A stretch of DNA of 63,921 bases, filler included, from Hyphochytrium catenoides (taxonomy: Eukaryota > Protista > Hyphochytriomycota): the NCBI GenBank assembly GCA_900088475.1. It is 10 parts of 10 records of this genome, joined end to end, with 100 filler letters (N's around TTAATTAATTAA, not from the genome) between each part and the next. Parts side by side here need not be neighbours in the genome. Positions count along the whole stretch, not along the records: positions 42,327 to 51,311 come from FLMG01004516.1; 9 more parts are not named here. The stretch is one strand, 5' to 3'. Each line of letters starts with the position of its first letter. Positions within the stretch are counted from its first letter, which is position 1. The notes under the pieces are model-generated. The model had not been told where the DNA came from. It did not search any database and saw nothing but the letters and a program-made list of their open reading frames with translations. Made by a program: the position numbers and the translations under genes. This document shows positions 42,327 through 51,411 of the stretch, in pieces.

Positions 42327-43420
42327 ATGGGGTTGCCAGTATCATTTCGAGGCACTGTGGAAGCAATTCAGATGAGGGTTGTCACAATATTGTTGACATT
42401 GCGGCTCTCGTCGAAGTCCTCTTGCAATTTCACCATGCCTCCCTGGCAGTTCCCTTCCTTGGTAGAAAGCGCACGAGGTTGTCGGAAACGGCAAGGACAA
42501 TCTTTTTGTAGGCTTTCTTGTCATCCCTGAGCCATTTTGAGTCCTGTTCCCGTCCTGCGGTTTTCTTGTCCTCCTTTTTAGTGTCCGCTGTAGAGGCTCC
42601 AGAGGGTTCCGGATCCGTAACGTGGTCCAGTAGACCTAGCTCGTCCAGATAGGCTGCCATTTTGACACTCCAGATGGGATAGTCATCTCGTCCATGAAGC
42701 TTGTTGATGGATAGAGTTCCTGAGGTTTGAGAGTCCATTTTCTCTGGAAGTAGAGAGATACGGAGTTTTGATTGCAGGGTCGTGATCTGCGTGAAAAACT
42801 GTGTATTCCGGCGTTTTTGACCAGTATATCTGAAAAATGTCAAAATGGTGTTCCAAATGGTGTCAAATAAGGTATATTTCACACCGCAAACTGGTATAAT
42901 TGACACAGTTTTGGGAATAAAGAGCTTTGGCTGTCAATTCAGAAAAATGTCAAATATAATCAATTGCTGTCAAATATCCTGTCAAATATCGGGATAATTG
43001 ACAGAAAATTGGCGATAATTGACCCAAAGCTGGTAAATTCACTCGTTGAGTGTGAATTCACAACTGGGGATGTAGCGGCAATGGTCTTCGGATTCCGATC
43101 CTGGAGGACAGTTGGATACTCCAGGGGTGGTCTGGGTCTTGATCCTGGAGGAGAGTTGGTTACTCCAGGGGTAGTCTTGTTCTTGGTCTTCGTTTGGTTG
43201 GTCCAGAGAGCTCGCTGAAGTCCTGGAGGAAGCGTGGGCCGATAACCTGTTATAATGTATGGGATTTTAAGAGACTCTTATTTAGGTTATGTGGTCTACT
43301 GATATGCTCGGAGTGAGTATGAAGTGATGAACTTTACAGAGATGGGTGGCAATGCCTGAAGCTTCTGTATGAGCACAATCTAGATGCAATGATAACAAAN
43401 GAACATAGTAGCACTCAACA
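42327..43420 (-). mobile_element. 5' part of Ty1/copia element A: LTR 43420-43248, PBS, leader, gag from 42738 (disrupted)
   Basis: Minus strand reads ..AACA then GGTTATCGGCCCA (copia half-tRNAiMet-type PBS). Gag INKLHGRDDYPIWSVKMAAYL..TAREAW is followed by a stop. The LTR contains an N at 43400. Confidence 0.88.
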
Positions 43421-43678
43421 TGAAGAGCTTATGGGACCCTGTTTCCTAGTTATCACGCAGTCTAGTTGTTCTGGAGAGTAACTGTGTCTCGTATAAACCA
43501 CTAGACCCAGTTACTACTTCTTGACGTCATATGATGACTTACCTGATAATAACCTAGTTATCATAACTCTGAAACACTTTGTTTTGTGCCTTCTTCCTCT
43601 TGTCAGATAGAGCCTGGAACTGTGAGCCTTTCAGAACTGTGAGCCTTTCAGAGCTCTTGTCAGCTTCCGCTCTCAACA
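43421..43678. mobile_element. LTR-like segment ending CTCAACA, with internal 17-bp tandem duplication
   Basis: Starts TG and ends CAACA exactly where the pol frame (VFGC) begins. GAACTGTGAGCCTTTCA is doubled at 43617-43650. Confidence 0.55.
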
Positions 43679-45168
43679 GTGTTTTTGGTTGTCTTGCCTA
43701 CGCACTCGTACCGGACTCGAAGAGGCAGAAAATGGACCCCAAGTCAAAGCGTTACATTTTCGTTGGGTACCCAGACAACTCAAAGGCCTATCGACTTTAT
43801 GACAGAGAGAGTGGTACCATCATTGAGCGTAGGGATGCTTTGTTCGATGAAGGGGAATTTGGTTCGCTACTTCAAAACTCGCCTCAGTTGCGTGACTCCG
43901 TACTCCATCTCTTTGATGTACTTAGCGAGGGAGACAGCTCCCTCCTTAACAATCCGACTCGTAAAGGGGATTCTGATCAACATATGTCCATCCAAGTGCC
44001 TCCCCCCAACGAATACCTCGCCAAACAACTCGATACTGCTGCCCGCCCCTTGCCTGCTCCTGAACCAGCAGACACCGTATGCGATACCAACAATTTAACT
44101 TCGATAGATCCGTGTTCACCTCCCGACGGACCCCAAACGATAGAGGAGGCTCTTTCTGGACCGGATGCGTCGGAGTGGAACGCCGCTATCCTCAGTGAAA
44201 TGGCATTTATGGAACAACACGACGTTTGGGAACTCGTTGAACGTCCTCCAGAAGCAAACCTCATTGGGTGTAAATGGGTGTTTCGCGTAAAATATGGAAG
44301 TGATGGCACCATCGATCGCTATAAGGCACGACTCGTTGCTCAAGGCTACAATCAGAAACAGGGGATCGATCACAACGAGGTCTTCGCTCCAGTGGTTAGC
44401 TATGAGTCCGTCCGATGTATTCTCTCTTTAGCAGCGATGTATGACTTTGAGATTCATCATCTGGATATTCGTACTGCCTTTCTCCATGGAGATCCTGACG
44501 AGACCATATACATGCGCTAACCCCCGGGATTCGCTCAACCAGGACAGGAACATCTGGTTTGTTAGCTAAAGCGCAGCATTTATGGGCTCAAACAAAGTCC
44601 TCGCCAATGGAACAAACTATTAGACAGTTATCTTCGCGATAACGGATTTGAACCCAGCTTATGTGAACCCTGCGTCTACATCAACAGGTCCGGGGAGGAT
44701 GGCAAGCTGACCATCGTGTCGACTTTCGTAGACGACCTGCTGATCTTCGCGCCAAGCAACAATCGTGCGGATCAAGTCAAAGGACTTCTAAAGGACAATT
44801 TGATGTGAAGGACTTAGGAGAACTCCAATACTTCCTAGGAGTAGAAGTTATTAGGGATCGAAAGAATCGGAAGATTTACCTTCGCCAACGAAGATTTATT
44901 CAAGACCTCCTGAAGCGTTACGGCATGGAAGACTGTAACCCAATCAGCACGCCTCTTACTCATGGTGAAAAGCTACCCAAGGCAGACTCTCTCTCTACAC
45001 TGACTTCTGAAGAGGAGGAATATTTACTCAAGATACCGTACAGGAATGCTGTTGGCAGTCTTATCCATCTGATAGTAGCCTCCACACCAGATATAGCCTT
45101 CGCGGTACAATCGGTTAGCCAGCATATGACTAACTACAGACAGACTCACTGGACCGCTGTGAAGCGGA
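43679..45168 (+). pseudogene. Ty1/copia pol fragment (post-integrase SH3 region and reverse transcriptase)
   Basis: VFGCLAY, FVGYP, IGCKWVF, YKARLVAQGY, LDIRTAFLHG, IYGLKQSPRQW, FVDDLL, YRNAVGSL and HWTAVKR. In-frame stops near 44518 and 44563 and a frameshift near 44800. Confidence 0.95.
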
Positions 45169-45534
45169 TGTTAGATTTTATCATTGGATGGTGAGTGATG
45201 ACCTCTACAGAGATGGGTGGCAATGCCTGAAGCTTCTGTATGAGCACAATCTAGATGCAATGATAACAAAGGGACTTGGTATTGATGTGTGTGAAGATTT
45301 CTCTCAATGATCACTCAGTCCTGAGAGCCTGGTCTGGACTCGAGATCTTTTGCTCGGCTCAGCTTCCCTCATCATCTCTCTCTCCTCTGCTGCTCCTGTG
45401 TTCTTCTGGGAATTCTTCTCACATCCCTCTTTCCCATAACACAGGTGTACCCGTAACGTCTATGTCCCTGAGAGCTAGGTGTGTATAGAGATTGACTTCT
45501 GTACTACTGACACCGAACATAGTAGCACTCAACA
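45169..45534 (-). mobile_element. 366-bp LTR related to the LTR of element A
   Basis: TGTT..AACA ends. Shares TACAGAGATGGG..GATAACAAA and GAACATAGTAGCACTCAACA with 43248-43420, and truncates the RT frame. Confidence 0.85.
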
Positions 45535-45573
45535 GTGAGCACTTTGAATTAATATTGGGGGGTATCTGGATAT

Positions 45574-48500
45574 CCCTACTGTAATTTTGGCCACTTATAA
45601 GTAGATAACCCTTTCAGATCACCCCTCGGAAGAGGGTGATTACACACTTATAAGTAGTCAAACTGGCCCTTTGTTAGCCATGTTGGAGAGCTCAGTTGGC
45701 GCGCTTTCAATGGCGGGAAACCCAAATTGAGGGCATGATGTTGCGAAAGGTACCTTAAGCCCTGCTGGCACAAACTTTCAGCGCAATCCGATCTGTGGTT
45801 GCAGAGTTACAGCTGAACTCCCACCAGGTACCCTTACCCTAAGATAAGGCTGTATAGGCTGCCGTGTGTGCTGTCTTCCCATCGGTGTATCATCACGACG
45901 ACCACTTTCACGCTATCATCATCATCATTGTTGTCTGGAACCTCCGTGGTTACCTAGCCCGCGTTATCTCTTCCATCATGTCTTTCCACTTTGATAGTCA
46001 GGCCGAGGGTGACCTCGAAAGGAGTATGAGAGGGGACACTTCCCAAGAGGATGCACAATTTATCAATTCTGTTGAGTACATGTTTGGATCTGCCACAGGA
46101 GAGGAAGGTCCTCAGGTATAGTTAGTTGTTGGACGAGATAGGAAGAAAATGCTCTCCACTTCCTCCCTTCGATTGATCTTCTTCCATTCTTCATCTTCCT
46201 TCTAAATTCCAGGACGACGAGCTCCGCTCACCGTTATCCACCCACTCAGTTCCCCGCGAATCAGGCAGCCAGAGGGAAAGCCAGATGCCTGGAAGTACTG
46301 CTCCATACTCGCCTACCTTGTCCATTCCTGCTTCTTTTCCGCCGTCTCAGGTTGCTAGTCAGCTCTCGTGCAGCCCCTCATTATTGCACTCAGCAGAGAT
46401 TGAAAGCCAGATTCCTGGAAGTGCTTTCCTTACTCATCCGCCCTCTACCACTAGTGATGAGCATGAGAGCCAGAGGATACCTGGATCTATTCCAACGTCT
46501 TCTTTCGCCTCCCAGGGTGAGAGTGAGATCGGTGGCGTTAGAAGTAGCTCTTCCATCCCTTCTCAACCAGACCCTAAGTCACCTCTTGGAGAGGAAAGAG
46601 ACGATTTCCCGCAGCAGGAAGGCTTGGCAGCGCATGCCAGTAGTGTGAGCCGTAGACGGGGAGGACATGGAAGGGGACGCGGCACAACAGCTCGTGGTGG
46701 GAGAGGCAGTAGAGGAGGCAGAGGCAGGGGTGCTGGTGGCAGAGGACGAGGACGGCCCTCCTCTGCTACAGGTCAGAGTCTGGATTATGAGGGTGATGAT
46801 CTTAGTGCTAGTCGCAGACCCACGCCTGCTCAAGCCGCCCGCCAAAAAGCCAAGCGTGATGGAGCTACAGCTGGGTGGGTTACGGACTCTATCCCCCAAT
46901 GGGAGCTGGTGGATGAGGATACGTTCTTGCAGAGACCAATAACAGAGCGCTTCATACAGCATCATATACACGTTCTATCCAAACTAGAAAGAAAGTTTGA
47001 AGTCCGACGAGAGACTGATGATGACGAACGCAATAACGTTAGCACTAGTAGTCATCCTAGCCGGGCAGACTTTGTTATCCTCTTGTTGGAGCCAGCGCTT
47101 CATAAGCTAACACGTATGTGCAATGACGCTATGCCAGCGGAGGTAATGCGCACGAACCCGGTGGAGTTCATGCGCTTTCTTGGGACGCTTGTCGGGATCA
47201 GCACCATGAAGGTCTCTCCAAGCATGGCCCACCAACTTCTTACAGCTTTAAAGTGGCCCGTTCTTCCAGAGCATAGGTACAAGGAGATACTTCGATACGT
47301 GCGTGCCTATTCTTCTGTTGATCGGGATGGCTCATGGGATGGCGGGTGGCTTGCCCAAGGCGACCTCACTCCGAACCTGAGCGCCTTTGAGGCACTAATT
47401 TTGGAAGAGTCACGACGACTTCTTCTTAACATTCAGAATAGCTGTCTCGTACTGGACGATGAGCTGGTAGCATCTAGGTCTCAAGATGTTCAGGTACATC
47501 GTCACCTGCTGTGCCCTTTACATAGGACCTTTCCAGCGTTGATCCTCTTCCTCACCCACCAGGTGAAAAGTCTTAATGCCAGGAAGGCTGGCAAGGAGGG
47601 ACACAGCATGGATGTGGTCGCTGACAGCTTCACCAGGATTGTGTTTGCCACCCGGCTAAAGCGACGGGGAGCAGAACAAGATGAGTCAGTCAAGAAGCTG
47701 CTTGAGACTTTGAAGGAAGAGCAACAAGGCAGCTGGAGAGGAGGCATGGTCACGATGGACCGTGGATATTGTAAGCCACAATTGGTTGAAGCTGTTCTCC
47801 GAATGTGAGTAAACTTTTCTTATGATGTTTTAAGGTAGGGCCTAATCTCTAACTGCAGGGGGCTGGGATGTGCTTTCATCGTCCCTGATCACCTGGCAAA
47901 TCATCACCCTTTCTGTACCTCCAACCAGTTCGCACCGCTTGCAAGAACTCACTCATCAGATGCTGATGATATCAGCCAGAACTTAGAGCCACAAGCACCA
48001 GACGAAAGGTCCTCGAAGTGGATCATACCAGATGCGCCTCTTCTAGGTCCTATGGTCTATAGTGCTTCGAAAACTGTCGCTGTTTCTGGCGAATCTAGAG
48101 TGTCCGCGCAAAAGGTTCACGCCATCGCAGTACGGGAAAGGGGCGATAAGAAGTCCACGAAGGTGCTGAGATTCTATATATCCTGGCCCACTATCCCTCC
48201 TTTCCTTCACAAGTGGATGGCAGTATACATCAAAGGTGAGTGAATTAGGCTGCAGCTCTTCCAAGAACATAAGGTTGACAGGTTGTGCTGCAGGGTCAAA
48301 CGGCAACGCCAAGGATACCTTGTTCTACCCCTCAGACGATAGATCAAATGAACGTATCCGGATTGAGGACCTTTTGGTTGGCAAAGTAACCCCACTTACA
48401 GCTGGACAGCGATGTGCGGATTGGTTTATAGCCCGTGCCCACAGGTGTACTGGGACCATGGCCCGTTTTGTCGCAAAGTATGATGTTGGGGCTCGTTTCC

Positions 48501-51007
48501 TATTGAATAAAGAGCAAGTGGAGTCGACCAGTACATTGCCTACCAACTCAGAGCTGATGACAAAGTTCACAACCAGTTGGTACTCGAAAGCGACGTCCAC
48601 TGACGAGATGCGGCAGGGGACGAAGAACGAAGTGAGACAACACCCTTACACTTCCATTTCTTGCTGTAGGCTGTACCTCTGACTACTTTTCATTCATTCT
48701 ATCGCAGGGCAAGATCATCGAGGCCTTGAAAGGACGCCCAGACTTTATTTTAAGCATCTGTGAAGTTGGCCTTCTCCAACATAAAGAAAAGCCGTGGTTG
48801 GCTGTTTCTCCAGATGCCATCGCACTTATCCGTCACCCGGGAACAGGGGAAGAACTTCTTGCCACCGTGGAGCTGAAGACTGCAGTCGCTTCTAGTGCTG
48901 TTGAAGAGTTAGTTAGAGTGGCAGGTGGCTTGGGGAGGTTACTCTCTGCTAAAGTTGGGGATGAGGTCTGGTGGCAGTCCGTGCCTCCAGACCATCGGGC
49001 ACAGGTCCTACATCAGATGTATGTTTGCGGCCTCAACCATGCGCTATATGTAAAAGCGACTACCACTAGGATAGGTTACATGGTTCTCGTGCACGCCAGC
49101 GATGAGCAACTGGACGTCTTCGGAGAGAGTCTTTCCTGCCTGGAGGAAGTGTTGGGCTGGGCTCACGAAGTCATTCCGCGGATACCGGCATTTGTTGGCC
49201 GAGAAGATAAAGAGATCATCTCTTCTCACCTCCCATTTTGGAGGATGGTAAACTCCTCCATCACTGCAAATGGCCCTTCTAAGCCAGTCCTTCTATACCG
49301 ACACGCAGCTCAGGCCCTCTATAGCAAAACCAAGGGCGGGTTGGACGGATCCAGCGAATATCACGCTGGCTTTTCACCAAATGCTGGTTCACTGGATTTT
49401 GAGAGGAAGTTTGTTCTCCGCAGCATCTTCACTGTCTTTTTCAACGCGGCAATCATGTGGAGAATGTGGCAACGACGGGACTTGTTTGTGGGCTTAGCGT
49501 CATCCTCATCAACGTTGCGCAGGTTGCGAGACGCACTCAACCATGTAGAGTCTATCAATGACTTCATGAAGGAGGTAGCAGAAGAGCTCTGTGATGTGCA
49601 CTATCTTCATCAGAAGCTATTGGAGTCCTTCAACCTTTCAGGAGGTCACCAGGATAATATTGTGGGAGGTGCTTCAGACAGTCCCCTAACTGTCACCGAT
49701 CATGAGGCAATCAAAACTCTCCAAGCTCAGGTACCCAAGTACAAGAAGCTGAAATTTTTCGCAACCACAGAGGCGGGTATAAAGCTAAGGTATGTGAGGT
49801 TACCTGCATCGGTCCCTACATGCATCCCTCAAAATCTAATAGGTCTTGTTCCTAGACTTCAAACACCGGGCCATCTCTCTGTAAGGCCCAAGGTTGTGGA
49901 TGGCAGGCCTGTTCTACAAGGTAGATCCTGCGAGTTGTGCAACCGGAAGACCGTCTTCTATTGCCCCGTTTGTGGCGTTTTCCTCTGTACTAGTCTTGCT
50001 CCCCAAGCACGGGTCATCTGCACGGAAACCTTCCATAAAAGAAAGAAGCTGCCAATCGAGAAAGTAGAGCGGCAAAAGAGACCCTACAGAAAAAGAGAAC
50101 TCAGTTCGGGTGAGGAAAATGAATCGAGATCTGAGGAGGAGGGTGATGCAAGCCATGAAGAGAGGGAGAGACAGTCAAAAAGACAACGAAAGGCAGGCAG
50201 TGATACAGGTAGCGAAGAAGAGAGGAGGTCTGTCTGATCAAAAGAAGATAATGTCCCGAAATAAAGCCATCTCTCCGACTTTCCAGGAGTAGCTTTCCTA
50301 GTAGTAGCCGTCCAATTACTTTCCAGACCTTATATCACTTTACTAAGCTCTCCGTAAACCCCAAACCTTCCCACCAGCGTGCCTCCCAAACCTACAATGA
50401 AGTCCTCCTTGAGCTCACCTCTCTATTCCGGCTGCATTTCCATACTTTCCAAGGAAGATCATGAGCTAGCTGGTCAGAGCATGAGGAGACAAGGTGTAAC
50501 AGTAGCACAGAACAGAGCGGACTGTGAGAGAGTCCTTGATAAAAGCGTTAACTTCTTCAGGTGGAAAGTTAGCTCTATCCTTAGTACAAGCAGGAAGACG
50601 AGGTCAAGTCCCAGCGGCCCAAGAAGCAGTTTTGCTCTGGATGAGGGGTTGATGGACAAGCTGCTTCTTTTGATGAGGCAAAACAGAAGCTTTTGTAACG
50701 ACCCAAGGCAAGCCCAGAGGTGTTGTGTTCTGTAAGCCATCCTTTTGTGAATAGCTTTTCTCACTTATAAGTGGGTAATTCTAAAAATAGCGGTTACTGG
50801 TCAGAAAATAAGGCTGGACCTCCTTACCAATTCATGTCAACAGCGGCTTTGATAGGCCTTCTTTGAGCCTGCCCTCTTGCAGCATCCATCTCAAGTCATG
50901 TCTTTAGAGTTTTTTTCAAGCCGCAAGACAATACCTCTTCGGGAAGCAAAACAATGGCTGACCAAAAATTGCCTACTTATAAGTAGCCAAAATTCTGTAC
51001 AGTAGGG
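45574..51007 (+). mobile_element. Complete piggyBac-related DNA transposon, 5434 bp, CCCT..AGGG termini, ATAT target duplication
   Basis: Left end ATAT|CCCTACTGTAATTTTGGCCACTTATAAGTAG. Right end reverse-complemented ATAT|CCCTACTGTACAGAATTTTGGCTACTTATAAGTAG. ATAT at 45570-45573 and 51008-51011. Confidence 0.93.
45978..50237 (+). CDS. piggyBac-type DDD transposase with inserted YqaJ-like exonuclease domain and C-terminal Cys-rich domain, 7 exons, 1279 aa
   Basis: Exons 45978-46115, 46213-47493, 47563-47804, 47859-48235, 48294-48631, 48708-49789 and 49856-50237 are all GT-AG and total 3840 nt open. DDD motifs LVLDDEL, VTMDRGY, YSKTKGGLD. YqaJ motifs QRCADW, MRQGTKNE, LAVSPDA, VELK, QVLHQM. Cys-rich domain CELC..CPVC..LC..CTETFH. 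Confidence 0.92.
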
Positions 51008-51216
51008 ATATACACCGGAGAAAAGTTTGTACGCTCCGGGATTTGAACCCAGGACCTCTGACTTTGATGCCGACACCCTAACCAGTATGCACCATACACT
51101 AAACGTACACTTGACTAATCTCCGTTTTTGTTTATATACCAGGGGCTCTTCCCCTCTGCGTCGTCCGCTGTACACTTTTTGGTGTCAACGTCGATCATAG
51201 TTCAACACTCCCCCGG
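51008..51216 (-). mobile_element. Polypurine tract and start of a 3' LTR, interrupted by the piggyBac-like element
   Basis: Minus strand GGGGGAG immediately followed by TGTTGAA at 51207, the same arrangement as the PPT/LTR junction at 63382. Confidence 0.6.
51029..51108 (-). pseudogene. tRNA-like sequence (Pol III A/B boxes, acceptor and T stems, abnormal D and anticodon arms)
   Basis: GTACGTT..AGCGTAC acceptor stem, TGGTGCATACTGG A-box-like, CTGGGTTCAAATCCCGG T arm. TATATAAA lies about 25 nt upstream and TTTT just downstream. Confidence 0.7.
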
Positions 51217-51411
51217 ATTCTAGAGAACTCTGTAAGCTCTAGATTCAAATGGAACTGTGATGGTCATCCGTGGTCACAGAACCGAATAGCTCACTATATT
51301 GCCCGGCTTAANNNNNNNNNNNNNNNNNNNNNNNNNNNNNNNNNNNNNNNNNNNNTTAATTAATTAANNNNNNNNNNNNNNNNNNNNNNNNNNNNNNNNN
51401 NNNNNNNNNNN

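Follow-up and report, generated by a model that had tools for sequence, protein, structure and literature searches.

A piggyBac-superfamily transposon in Hyphochytrium catenoides whose transposase very probably carries a nested lambda-exonuclease/YqaJ domain

The window analysed here is a stretch of 63,921 nucleotides from Hyphochytrium catenoides (assembly GCA_900088475.1), composed of 10 parts of 10 records joined with filler, and all positions count along it. The part at 42327-51311 (FLMG01004516.1) is eukaryotic DNA with about 42-56% G+C. It holds a DNA transposon of 5,434 bp at 45574-51007, and inside the transposon lies one gene, on the plus strand at 45978-50237. The gene very probably encodes a piggyBac-type transposase with three catalytic aspartates (DDD; D1, D2 and D3) in which a complete lambda-exonuclease/YqaJ domain is nested between D2 and D3. 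The chain of about 1,300 amino acids starts with a disordered N-terminus rich in Arg-Gly (RG), followed by a helical DNA-binding/dimerisation part and the RNase H-like strands with D1 and D2. It continues through the β insertion domain, the PD-(D/E)XK exonuclease, the D3 helix, a second helical part and a Cys-rich zinc domain.

The element is a structurally complete DNA transposon of the piggyBac superfamily, inserted in a high-copy short interspersed nuclear element (SINE). Its terminal inverted repeats (TIRs) are near-perfect, both begin 5'-CCCTA, and they measure 31 nt on the left (45574-45604, plus strand) and 35 nt on the right (50973-51007, minus strand). The left TIR begins CCCTACTGT and includes the palindrome CCACTTATAAGT(GG); it was delimited by the inverted-repeat pairs I1 and I4 and by alignment of both ends. 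The right TIR, which ends ...CAGTAGGG, was delimited by inverted repeats and the same end alignment. A second subterminal copy of the ACTTATAAGT palindrome lies at 45646-45661 (pairs I5, I9, I10 and I24) and an additional copy at 50763-50774. The termini read CCCTACTGT...ACAGTAGGG, which is the CCC...GGG form of piggyBac, with the ACTTATAAGT palindrome inside. The target-site duplication ATAT is found directly outside the left terminus (45570-45573) and again outside the right one (51008-51011). The left end of Trichoplusia ni piggyBac consists of TTAA followed by CCCTAGAAAG..., with a palindromic internal repeat at bp 17-33 that is bound by a dimer of Cys-rich domains (PMC7351741). The two elements are alike in the CCCTA start of the TIR, in an internal repeat that is palindromic and lies some 15-35 bp from the end, and in a 4-bp palindromic A/T duplication with a central TA.

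The insertion site was characterised by depth. Contigs of three DNA runs were aligned to the locus and their depths were summed, which came to about 2e4 to 2.7e5 for the flanks (45400-45573 and 51012-51200) against 36-424 within the element, a difference of about 600-fold. ARAGORN placed a tRNA-like sequence inside the flanking repeat at 51027-51109, on the minus strand. We identify the very high-copy repeat as a minus-strand tRNA-derived SINE, one copy of which the element splits into parts at 45400-45569 and 51012-51200. Since the SINE is the insertion target, it supplies paralogous empty sites. Other, uninterrupted SINE copies run from ...GGATAT (to 45573) directly into ACCGGAGAAAAG..., which matches the window from about 51014, and they have one ATAT where the window has two. 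An Rfam search of 45200-51311 gave no match.

Before splicing, the window shows three long plus-strand open reading frames (ORFs) across 46285-50237. As a stand-in for the window protein we used P0002, a homologue of 804 amino acids that was located by a word-based search with the third ORF and is 36% identical. P0002 is one uninterrupted ORF through D1, D2, the exonuclease and D3 in two independent assemblies. In tblastn it was colinear with the window over all three ORFs, each window break appeared as a short gap, and a GT...AG pair that restores the frame was present at every break. The resulting model is a single gene of six exons and five GT-AG introns (97, 69, 54, 58 and 76 nt) with a product of about 1,301 amino acids. 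Introns 3 and 4 are bounded by GT and AG at the corresponding sites in two relatives, L004 and L003 (about 67% DNA identity to the window); the introns themselves are diverged in sequence, and the relatives' reading frame continues only once both are spliced. The intron-3 acceptor was placed at 48294 (or 48282), and L004 has an aligned acceptor there; we favour 48294, since the gene has to keep the conserved LFxP motif in an exon. An acceptor at 48336, giving 1,287 amino acids, was rejected, as it loses LFxP and is not the aligned L004 acceptor. The preliminary description of this locus had proposed one spliced frame of 1279 amino acids. The single frame stands, with its five GT-AG introns, the unbroken ORF of P0002 and the introns conserved in L004 and L003, and the length is corrected to 1,301.

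All six exons lie on the plus strand. Exon 1 (45978-46115) is tentative; it has an ATG, with GT as donor at 46116 and AG as acceptor ahead of 46213, and the ATG at 46285 is an alternative start. Exon 2 (46213-47493) encodes the Ser/Pro- and RG-rich N-terminus, which is disordered, then the helical part for DNA binding/dimerisation, and D1 (47455-47460). The RKAGKEGH...DVVAD strands and D2 (47758-47760, in the DRGY motif) are found in exon 3 (47563-47804). Exon 4 (47859-48235) contains strand β5, an HPF motif, an acidic loop and the three-stranded β insertion domain (about 48052-48226), as mapped from the strands of the P0002 model. The N-terminal half of the exonuclease domain (QRcaDWFiaR...TGT and STdeMrqGTkNE) is encoded by exon 5 (48294-48631), whose acceptor at 48294 and following donor at 48632 are kept in L004/L003. 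Exon 6 (48708-50237) carries the exonuclease residues D828 (48813), E847 (48870) and K849 (48876), then D3 (49344), the second helical part, the Cys-rich domain and a charged tail. The only other ORF tested in the element (50379-50732) had no Pfam match.

The transposase motifs are intact. D1 is found in VLDDELV (D461/D462 at 47455/47458), where the first D aligns with piggyBac D268, D2 in VTMDRGY (D539 at 47758) and D3 in KGGLDG (D1005 at 49344), within YSKTKGGLD. D1 and D2 are 78 (or 77) codons apart, and D2 and D3 are 466 codons apart. In T. ni piggyBac the residues are D268, D346 and D447, with spacings of 78 and 101 (PMC7351741). Every YqaJ/lambda-exonuclease motif falls between D2 and D3: QR...W at 48407-48424 (Q718-R719...W723), M..G..NE at 48608-48631 (M785..G788..E792), SPD at 48813 (S826-P-D828), ExK at 48870/48876 (E847-x-K849) and Q...Q at 49002/49014 (Q891...Q895). 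The preliminary description had reported the aspartate motifs at 47458, 47758 and 49344, the contrast in spacing with T. ni piggyBac and the YqaJ motifs between D2 and D3 with catalytic D, E and K intact, and we found all of these where it had placed them.

The relationship to piggyBac was seen at the level of the family. A profile of 37 members matched T. ni piggyBac (6x67) with E 5e-15 in two stretches flanking the insert. Profile positions 110-284 correspond to piggyBac residues 131-307, which include D268, and positions 782-865 correspond to residues 435-514, which include the YNQTKGGVD motif with D447. The transposase domain had been expected to be split around YqaJ, and the two stretches lie on either side of it as predicted. 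Against piggyBat (9c0f) the profile gave E 2e-9 and covered the Cys-rich domain (domain E 0.0048). In the window this C-terminal domain reads CxxC...CxxC...C...C....H (49929-50036, plus strand), it aligns to the piggyBat Cys-rich domain in the profile, and weak B-box zinc-finger Pfam matches were found in its region. The C-terminal piece of the RNase H-like core with D3 (49287-49449, plus strand) was recognised by the profile match to piggyBac 435-514, by DDE_Tnp_1_7 in P0002 and by the alignment of integrase cores. DDE_Tnp_1_7 (PF13843) was matched by 10 of the 37 members at E<=0.01, with a best E of 2.7e-8, and in P0002 its last 49 positions (301-349) lie at residues 648-695. As a lead only, all of the 100 named protein-language-model neighbours of the N-terminal part (100/100) carry DDE_Tnp_1_7. 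A phmmer search of the two long window ORFs against PDB sequences returned nothing relevant, and only the family profile reached piggyBac. The residues that piggyBac uses around the hairpin, the equivalent of Y439 and KGGVD, are still conserved.

The exonuclease domain occupies 48353-49242 on the plus strand, interrupted by the intron at 48632-48707, as mapped to the window from the Pfam and fold matches of P0002. Pfam YqaJ (PF09588) matched P0002 with 30 bits (cut-off 22) at residues 370-551, over profile positions 1-149, and it matched 18 of the 37 family members. Family profile positions 498-609 matched the lambda-exonuclease homologue LHK-Exo (3syy) with E 0.002, and an Arg/Lys of the exonuclease domain aligns with the WFAAR motif of that enzyme. 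This Arg/Lys, in WFxxR, is presumably the residue of the 5'-phosphate pocket.

For the nesting we examined P0002 as modelled by AlphaFold2 from the family alignment (mean predicted local distance difference test score, pLDDT, 83.4; predicted template modelling score, pTM, 0.79). Foldseek found Tn5 transposase, piggyBac transposase and lambda exonuclease in one chain, the last with a target-normalised template modelling (TM) score of 0.63-0.69. Structural realignment gave Z 23.0 for piggyBac (model residues 5-754), Z 19.4 for piggyBat (4-746) and Z 15.1 for lambda exonuclease (357-625, covering 206-211 of about 226 residues of 1avq/3sm4). Retroviral integrase catalytic cores aligned with a root-mean-square deviation of about 3.2 over model residues 83-695, so the RNase H fold is built from segments on both sides of the exonuclease. 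The order in the model is the D2 strand (167-170), strand β5 (189-194), the piggyBac-type insertion domain (260-303, with strands 260-269, 279-288 and 298-303), the exonuclease (about 343-625), and then a strand (641-646) followed by helices with D660. A three-stranded β insertion domain is therefore present between β5 and the D3 helix. The insertion domain of piggyBac comprises residues 372-433 and follows the fifth core strand (PMC7351741), and the three-stranded domain of the window protein has the identical topological place. In the model, the exonuclease is nested in the catalytic domain of the transposase, at the C-terminal edge of the insertion domain. At the family level the match goes far beyond chance, with E 5e-15 for the piggyBac profile, 30 bits for Pfam YqaJ and fold Z of 23 and 15. 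The nesting of YqaJ in the piggyBac DDD core, which the preliminary description had put forward, agrees with the profile, Pfam and fold matches and with the conservation in 37 homologues.

Conservation was counted in the 37-member alignment, and the window copy has every scored residue. D1 was kept in 34/37 members, D2 in 32/37 (four of the remaining five are gaps) and D3 in 34/37. In the exonuclease, the catalytic D was kept in 37/37, E in 35/37, K in 35/37, the W in 37/37 and the Arg/Lys of WFxxR in 37/37. Between the window and L003, the proportion of nonsynonymous differences (pN) was 0.18 and that of synonymous differences (pS) 0.77; synonymous sites are saturated, so the comparison is given as pN/pS only, with no dN/dS. 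This indicates coding constraint, of the kind left by purifying selection, over the exonuclease and the D3 region.

A search of protist genomes for the architecture had been proposed, and it was found in protists, red algae and metagenomes. HMMER with P0002 gave 1,487 cluster representatives at E<=1e-3, 115 of them at E<=1e-30. For many relatives of 900-1,400 amino acids a single match extended from before D1 to beyond D3, and the profile search added full-length members. They come from Durusdinium trenchii, Plasmodiophora brassicae, Gracilariopsis chorda and many metagenomes, and are named only "YqaJ domain-containing" or "hypothetical". Under such public names these transposons are missed in protist and algal genomes; this is a widespread protist/red-algal family that standard annotation has overlooked. 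In a tree of 51 family members the window protein is nearest to the copies of P. brassicae (39% identity), and the next clade mixes red-algal and metagenome sequences. The patchy occurrence in dinoflagellates, rhizarians, red algae and possibly, from AlphaFold DB entries, other lineages suggests horizontal spread. Among AlphaFold DB clusters, one entry of like architecture had TM 0.84 and another, with 18% identity, TM 0.57. One AlphaFold DB entry, which bears the name of a piggyBac-derived domain protein, aligns with the exonuclease and D3 part (query 404-741). Automatic annotation thus already touches the architecture, unremarked, in at least one organism.

A number of observations count against this reading. 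The unspliced pieces of the window match DDE_Tnp_1 at the end of the first ORF with E 0.023, below threshold, and exon 6 alone reaches 20.0 bits against YqaJ (cut-off 22, profile positions 80-149). The YqaJ profile match that had been anticipated for the locus was thus obtained in P0002 and fell short in the window's own exon. The window's own Pfam matches are sub-threshold because introns split both domains. Splicing was inferred from homology and comparative conservation, and exon 1 has no support in any homologue. The structure model is that of the 36% identical homologue, not of the window protein. Convergence of the DDD triad, which structure prediction was meant to check, is supported indirectly, through superposition of this homologue's model on piggyBac and integrase cores. 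No paired single-strand annealing protein of the Red-beta/RecT type is encoded in the element. The match to the empty site is inexact, as the right flank has two extra bases (AC) relative to the SINE consensus, in a position where SINE copies vary. The TTAA target and duplication of piggyBac were not found, and the window element is flanked by ATAT. Because every piggyBac feature tested is present except the TTAA target, we file the element as a divergent lineage of the piggyBac superfamily, not as canonical piggyBac. Finally, the internal depth of the element is low-copy, and a near-identical second allele or copy, with about 6 substitutions over 5.4 kb, is frameshifted in the N-terminal half of the exonuclease.

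These last two points raise the possibility, which we consider real but doubtful, that we are dealing with an inactive relic, or with a gene captured by the host, in which the architecture is genuine and this copy no longer transposes. In the second form, 1 nt is deleted at 48562, and 35 nt at 48593-48627 are replaced by 1 nt. The contigs of run X2 contain this form alone, and in X1 it is a minor form. All three runs also read G, not C, at 47648, which changes Ala502 to Gly. Against a relic stand the open spliced frame, the presence of every catalytic residue, the near-perfect TIRs and the intact ATAT flanks. The location inside a SINE is also what would be seen for a transposon insertion.

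The predicted place of the exonuclease bears on what it might do. In piggyBac, the DDD site nicks the DNA, makes and opens 4-nt hairpins and joins the ends at TTAA, and the insertion domain forms the lining of the channel in which flanking or target DNA is held (PMC7351741). By analogy with this biochemistry, the DDD site of the window protein would cleave and join DNA in the piggyBac manner, with a stagger of 4 nt at ATAT, a palindrome with central TA. The exonuclease hangs from the insertion domain that lines the flanking-DNA channel, so it would be expected to meet and act on the flanking donor or target DNA and not on the transposon ends. Seamless re-ligation of the donor, with loss of the copy, is the piggyBac default. 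Resection of the donor break in the 5'-to-3' direction would block this re-ligation. Repair of the donor would then be channelled to homology-directed copying from the sister chromatid or homologue, the element would be restored, and transposition would become effectively replicative. We tentatively prefer this reading, in which the exonuclease resects the donor break and favours homology-directed repair, and we hold it at somewhat less than an even chance.

A different task for the exonuclease is conceivable and, in our estimate, unlikely: it could be a nuclease that processes the second strand (5'-end) or the hairpin, replacing or modifying the hairpin route of piggyBac, like TnsA beside TnsB in Tn7. 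The work of cleavage would in that case be divided over two active sites of a single chain. Tn7 is the known case of a DDE-type transposase, TnsB, that acts with a nuclease, TnsA, in one transposition machine. The exonuclease belongs to the PD-(D/E)XK superfamily, in which TnsA is listed as a transposase (PMC3424549). Its catalytic residues are conserved, and it adjoins the insertion domain, the part of DDE transposases that deals with the hairpin and with the non-transferred strand (PMC7351741). However, its fold and motifs are those of processive 5'-3' exonucleases (lambda exonuclease Z 15, Arg/Lys kept) and not of restriction-like endonucleases, and the hairpin residues of piggyBac (the Y439 equivalent and KGGVD) have been retained. 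TnsA and TnsB are two separate bacterial proteins, and TnsA is restriction-endonuclease-like, not lambda-exonuclease-like; the likeness is drawn as a functional analogy only. After donor resection and a TnsA-like role, the remaining weight falls on other or unknown roles of the exonuclease.

It is very improbable that the splicing model has wrongly joined two separate proteins, a transposase and a YqaJ accessory protein. The three separate long ORFs of the unspliced window would fit such an arrangement, and in ISL2EU elements YqaJ is indeed a separate, second ORF (PMC4122938, PMC4482050). However, D3 and the last helix of the core come after the exonuclease, and a shorter transposase would lose its third catalytic residue. 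There are also homologues with one uninterrupted ORF through all parts, and intron positions are conserved.

That the element belongs to Kolobok (KolobokE) or ISL2EU and not to piggyBac can practically be dismissed, even though both are known with such nucleases (PMC9587614, PMC4482050) and Kolobok also makes 4-bp palindromic A/T duplications, since piggyBac and piggyBat match best in both sequence and fold, the termini are CCC...GGG and not RR...YY (Kolobok) or GG (ISL2EU), the third catalytic D lies in YxxxKGGVD, a piggyBac-type Cys-rich domain and internal palindrome are present, and no THAP domain was found with Pfam. KolobokE carries a nuclease like lambda exonuclease, located downstream of its transposase domain (PMC9587614). 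It differs from the window element in that the nuclease is not nested, and in its DDE residues, C/DxxH signature, RR...YY termini and TTAA. In the window we found CCC...GGG termini, a D in the KGGVD motif, a nested nuclease, and piggyBac and Tn5 as the best folds. ISL2EU elements are recognised by a PIF/Harbinger-like DDE transposase with THAP, a 2-bp duplication and GG termini (PMC4482050). They resemble the window element as eukaryotic DDE transposons with a YqaJ exonuclease and an A/T-rich palindromic target (AATT). They differ in having YqaJ as a separate ORF, in the PIF/Harbinger-like transposase with THAP, in the 2-bp duplication and in the GG termini. The window has a single fused ORF, piggyBac homology, no THAP in Pfam, CCC termini and 4-bp flanks. 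The preliminary description had named YqaJ as a passenger of ISL2EU and some Kolobok elements that does not lie within the DDD fold; such a nuclease is a separate ORF in ISL2EU and follows the transposase domain in KolobokE, and it is nested in neither (PMC4482050, PMC9587614).

Compared with piggyBac and piggyBat (6x67, 9c0f), the window family shares the DDD triad with a D1-D2 spacing of 78, an RNase H-like core that is broken after β5 by a three-stranded insertion domain, a helical domain formed from segments before and after the core, and a C-terminal Cys-rich domain. It differs from piggyBac in an additional stretch of about 370 residues that separates the insertion domain from the D3 helix and includes the complete exonuclease, in the long RG-rich N-terminus and in ATAT flanks instead of TTAA in the window's clade; DDE_Tnp_1_7 also mostly misses the family. 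With lambda exonuclease, LHK-Exo and YqaJ (1avq, 3sm4, 3syy) it shares the whole fold, the D...ExK site and the N-terminal QR..W...R..T motif. Unlike these phage enzymes, the window domain is embedded in a transposase and has no annealing partner encoded with it. A literature search (piggyBac with YqaJ, piggyBacX, insertion-domain exonuclease, lambda exonuclease) did not find this architecture described; it did not cover Repbase, where the family may already be catalogued.

Lambda-exonuclease-like nucleases are associated repeatedly with DDE transposons: ISL2EU encodes one in a separate ORF, KolobokE has one fused downstream and the window element has one nested. The recurrence suggests a general, unexplained benefit. 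It is possible, though doubtful as a whole, that the window protein is a single-chain two-nuclease transposase whose exonuclease is coupled to the DDD chemistry by donor resection or by second-strand/hairpin processing, with its target shifted from TTAA to ATAT, and that it represents the third independent, and topologically the most intimate, recruitment of YqaJ by a eukaryotic DDE transposon. piggyBac is a main tool for genome engineering, and TTAA targeting and footprint-free excision define it. Here a natural lineage keeps the piggyBac scaffold, targets ATAT and carries in its catalytic domain a conserved 5'-3' exonuclease that appears to be active. What a transposon gains from resecting DNA at its own break becomes a testable question.

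Related elements have similar ends. Both ends, with unrelated flank, ATAT, CCCTA(C/G/A)... and a palindrome of 14-22 bp at about bp 15-36, were seen in L001, L006 (P. brassicae), L007, L009 and L010 (G. chorda), and one end of such structure in L003 and L008. Together with the window, eight elements (window, L001, L003 and L006-L010) are flanked by ATAT, not TTAA, and no direct repeat beyond ATAT was found further outside their ends. L005, a relative from a different clade, has TTAA flanks. A palindrome of 24 bp, perfect or near-perfect, TTAACCCTCCATATGGAGGGTTAA, is present at both ends of L005 (5135-5158 and 8589-8612); it reads as two abutted CCC ends around ATAT, and the similarity goes on beyond it in direct orientation. 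L011 and L012, from other clades, had no recognisable TIRs in their contigs.

In a quick tree, the window and all ATAT elements fell in one clade of 24 members (support 96) with the D3 motif YS..KGGVD, and the clade of the TTAA element reads YN..K.G.D, like piggyBac. A link of YN with TTAA and of YS with ATAT is a lead only, with one TTAA element against seven ATAT elements. In piggyBac, N440 contacts A-2, a base common to TTAA and ATAT (PMC7351741). We do not claim that the YS/YN residue, at the N440 position, causes the switch between TTAA and ATAT.

L003 has an out-of-frame internal deletion (L003:1100-1200) relative to L004, a metagenome relative with 71% protein identity. The N-terminal region (...ERFLRHHK) runs directly into the exonuclease start, with loss of D1, D2 and the insertion domain, as is typical of a deletion derivative. 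L004 retains the sequence upstream of the L003 junction, back to the equivalent of window position 48012, where its contig ends.

To the left of the transposon in the window lie fragments of a copia-type long terminal repeat (LTR) retroelement in opposite orientations. By Pfam, they comprise gag (Retrotran_gag_2, DUF4219) at 42433-42906 on the minus strand, and an SH3-like integrase end with RVT_2, in two pieces, at 43579-45191 on the plus strand.

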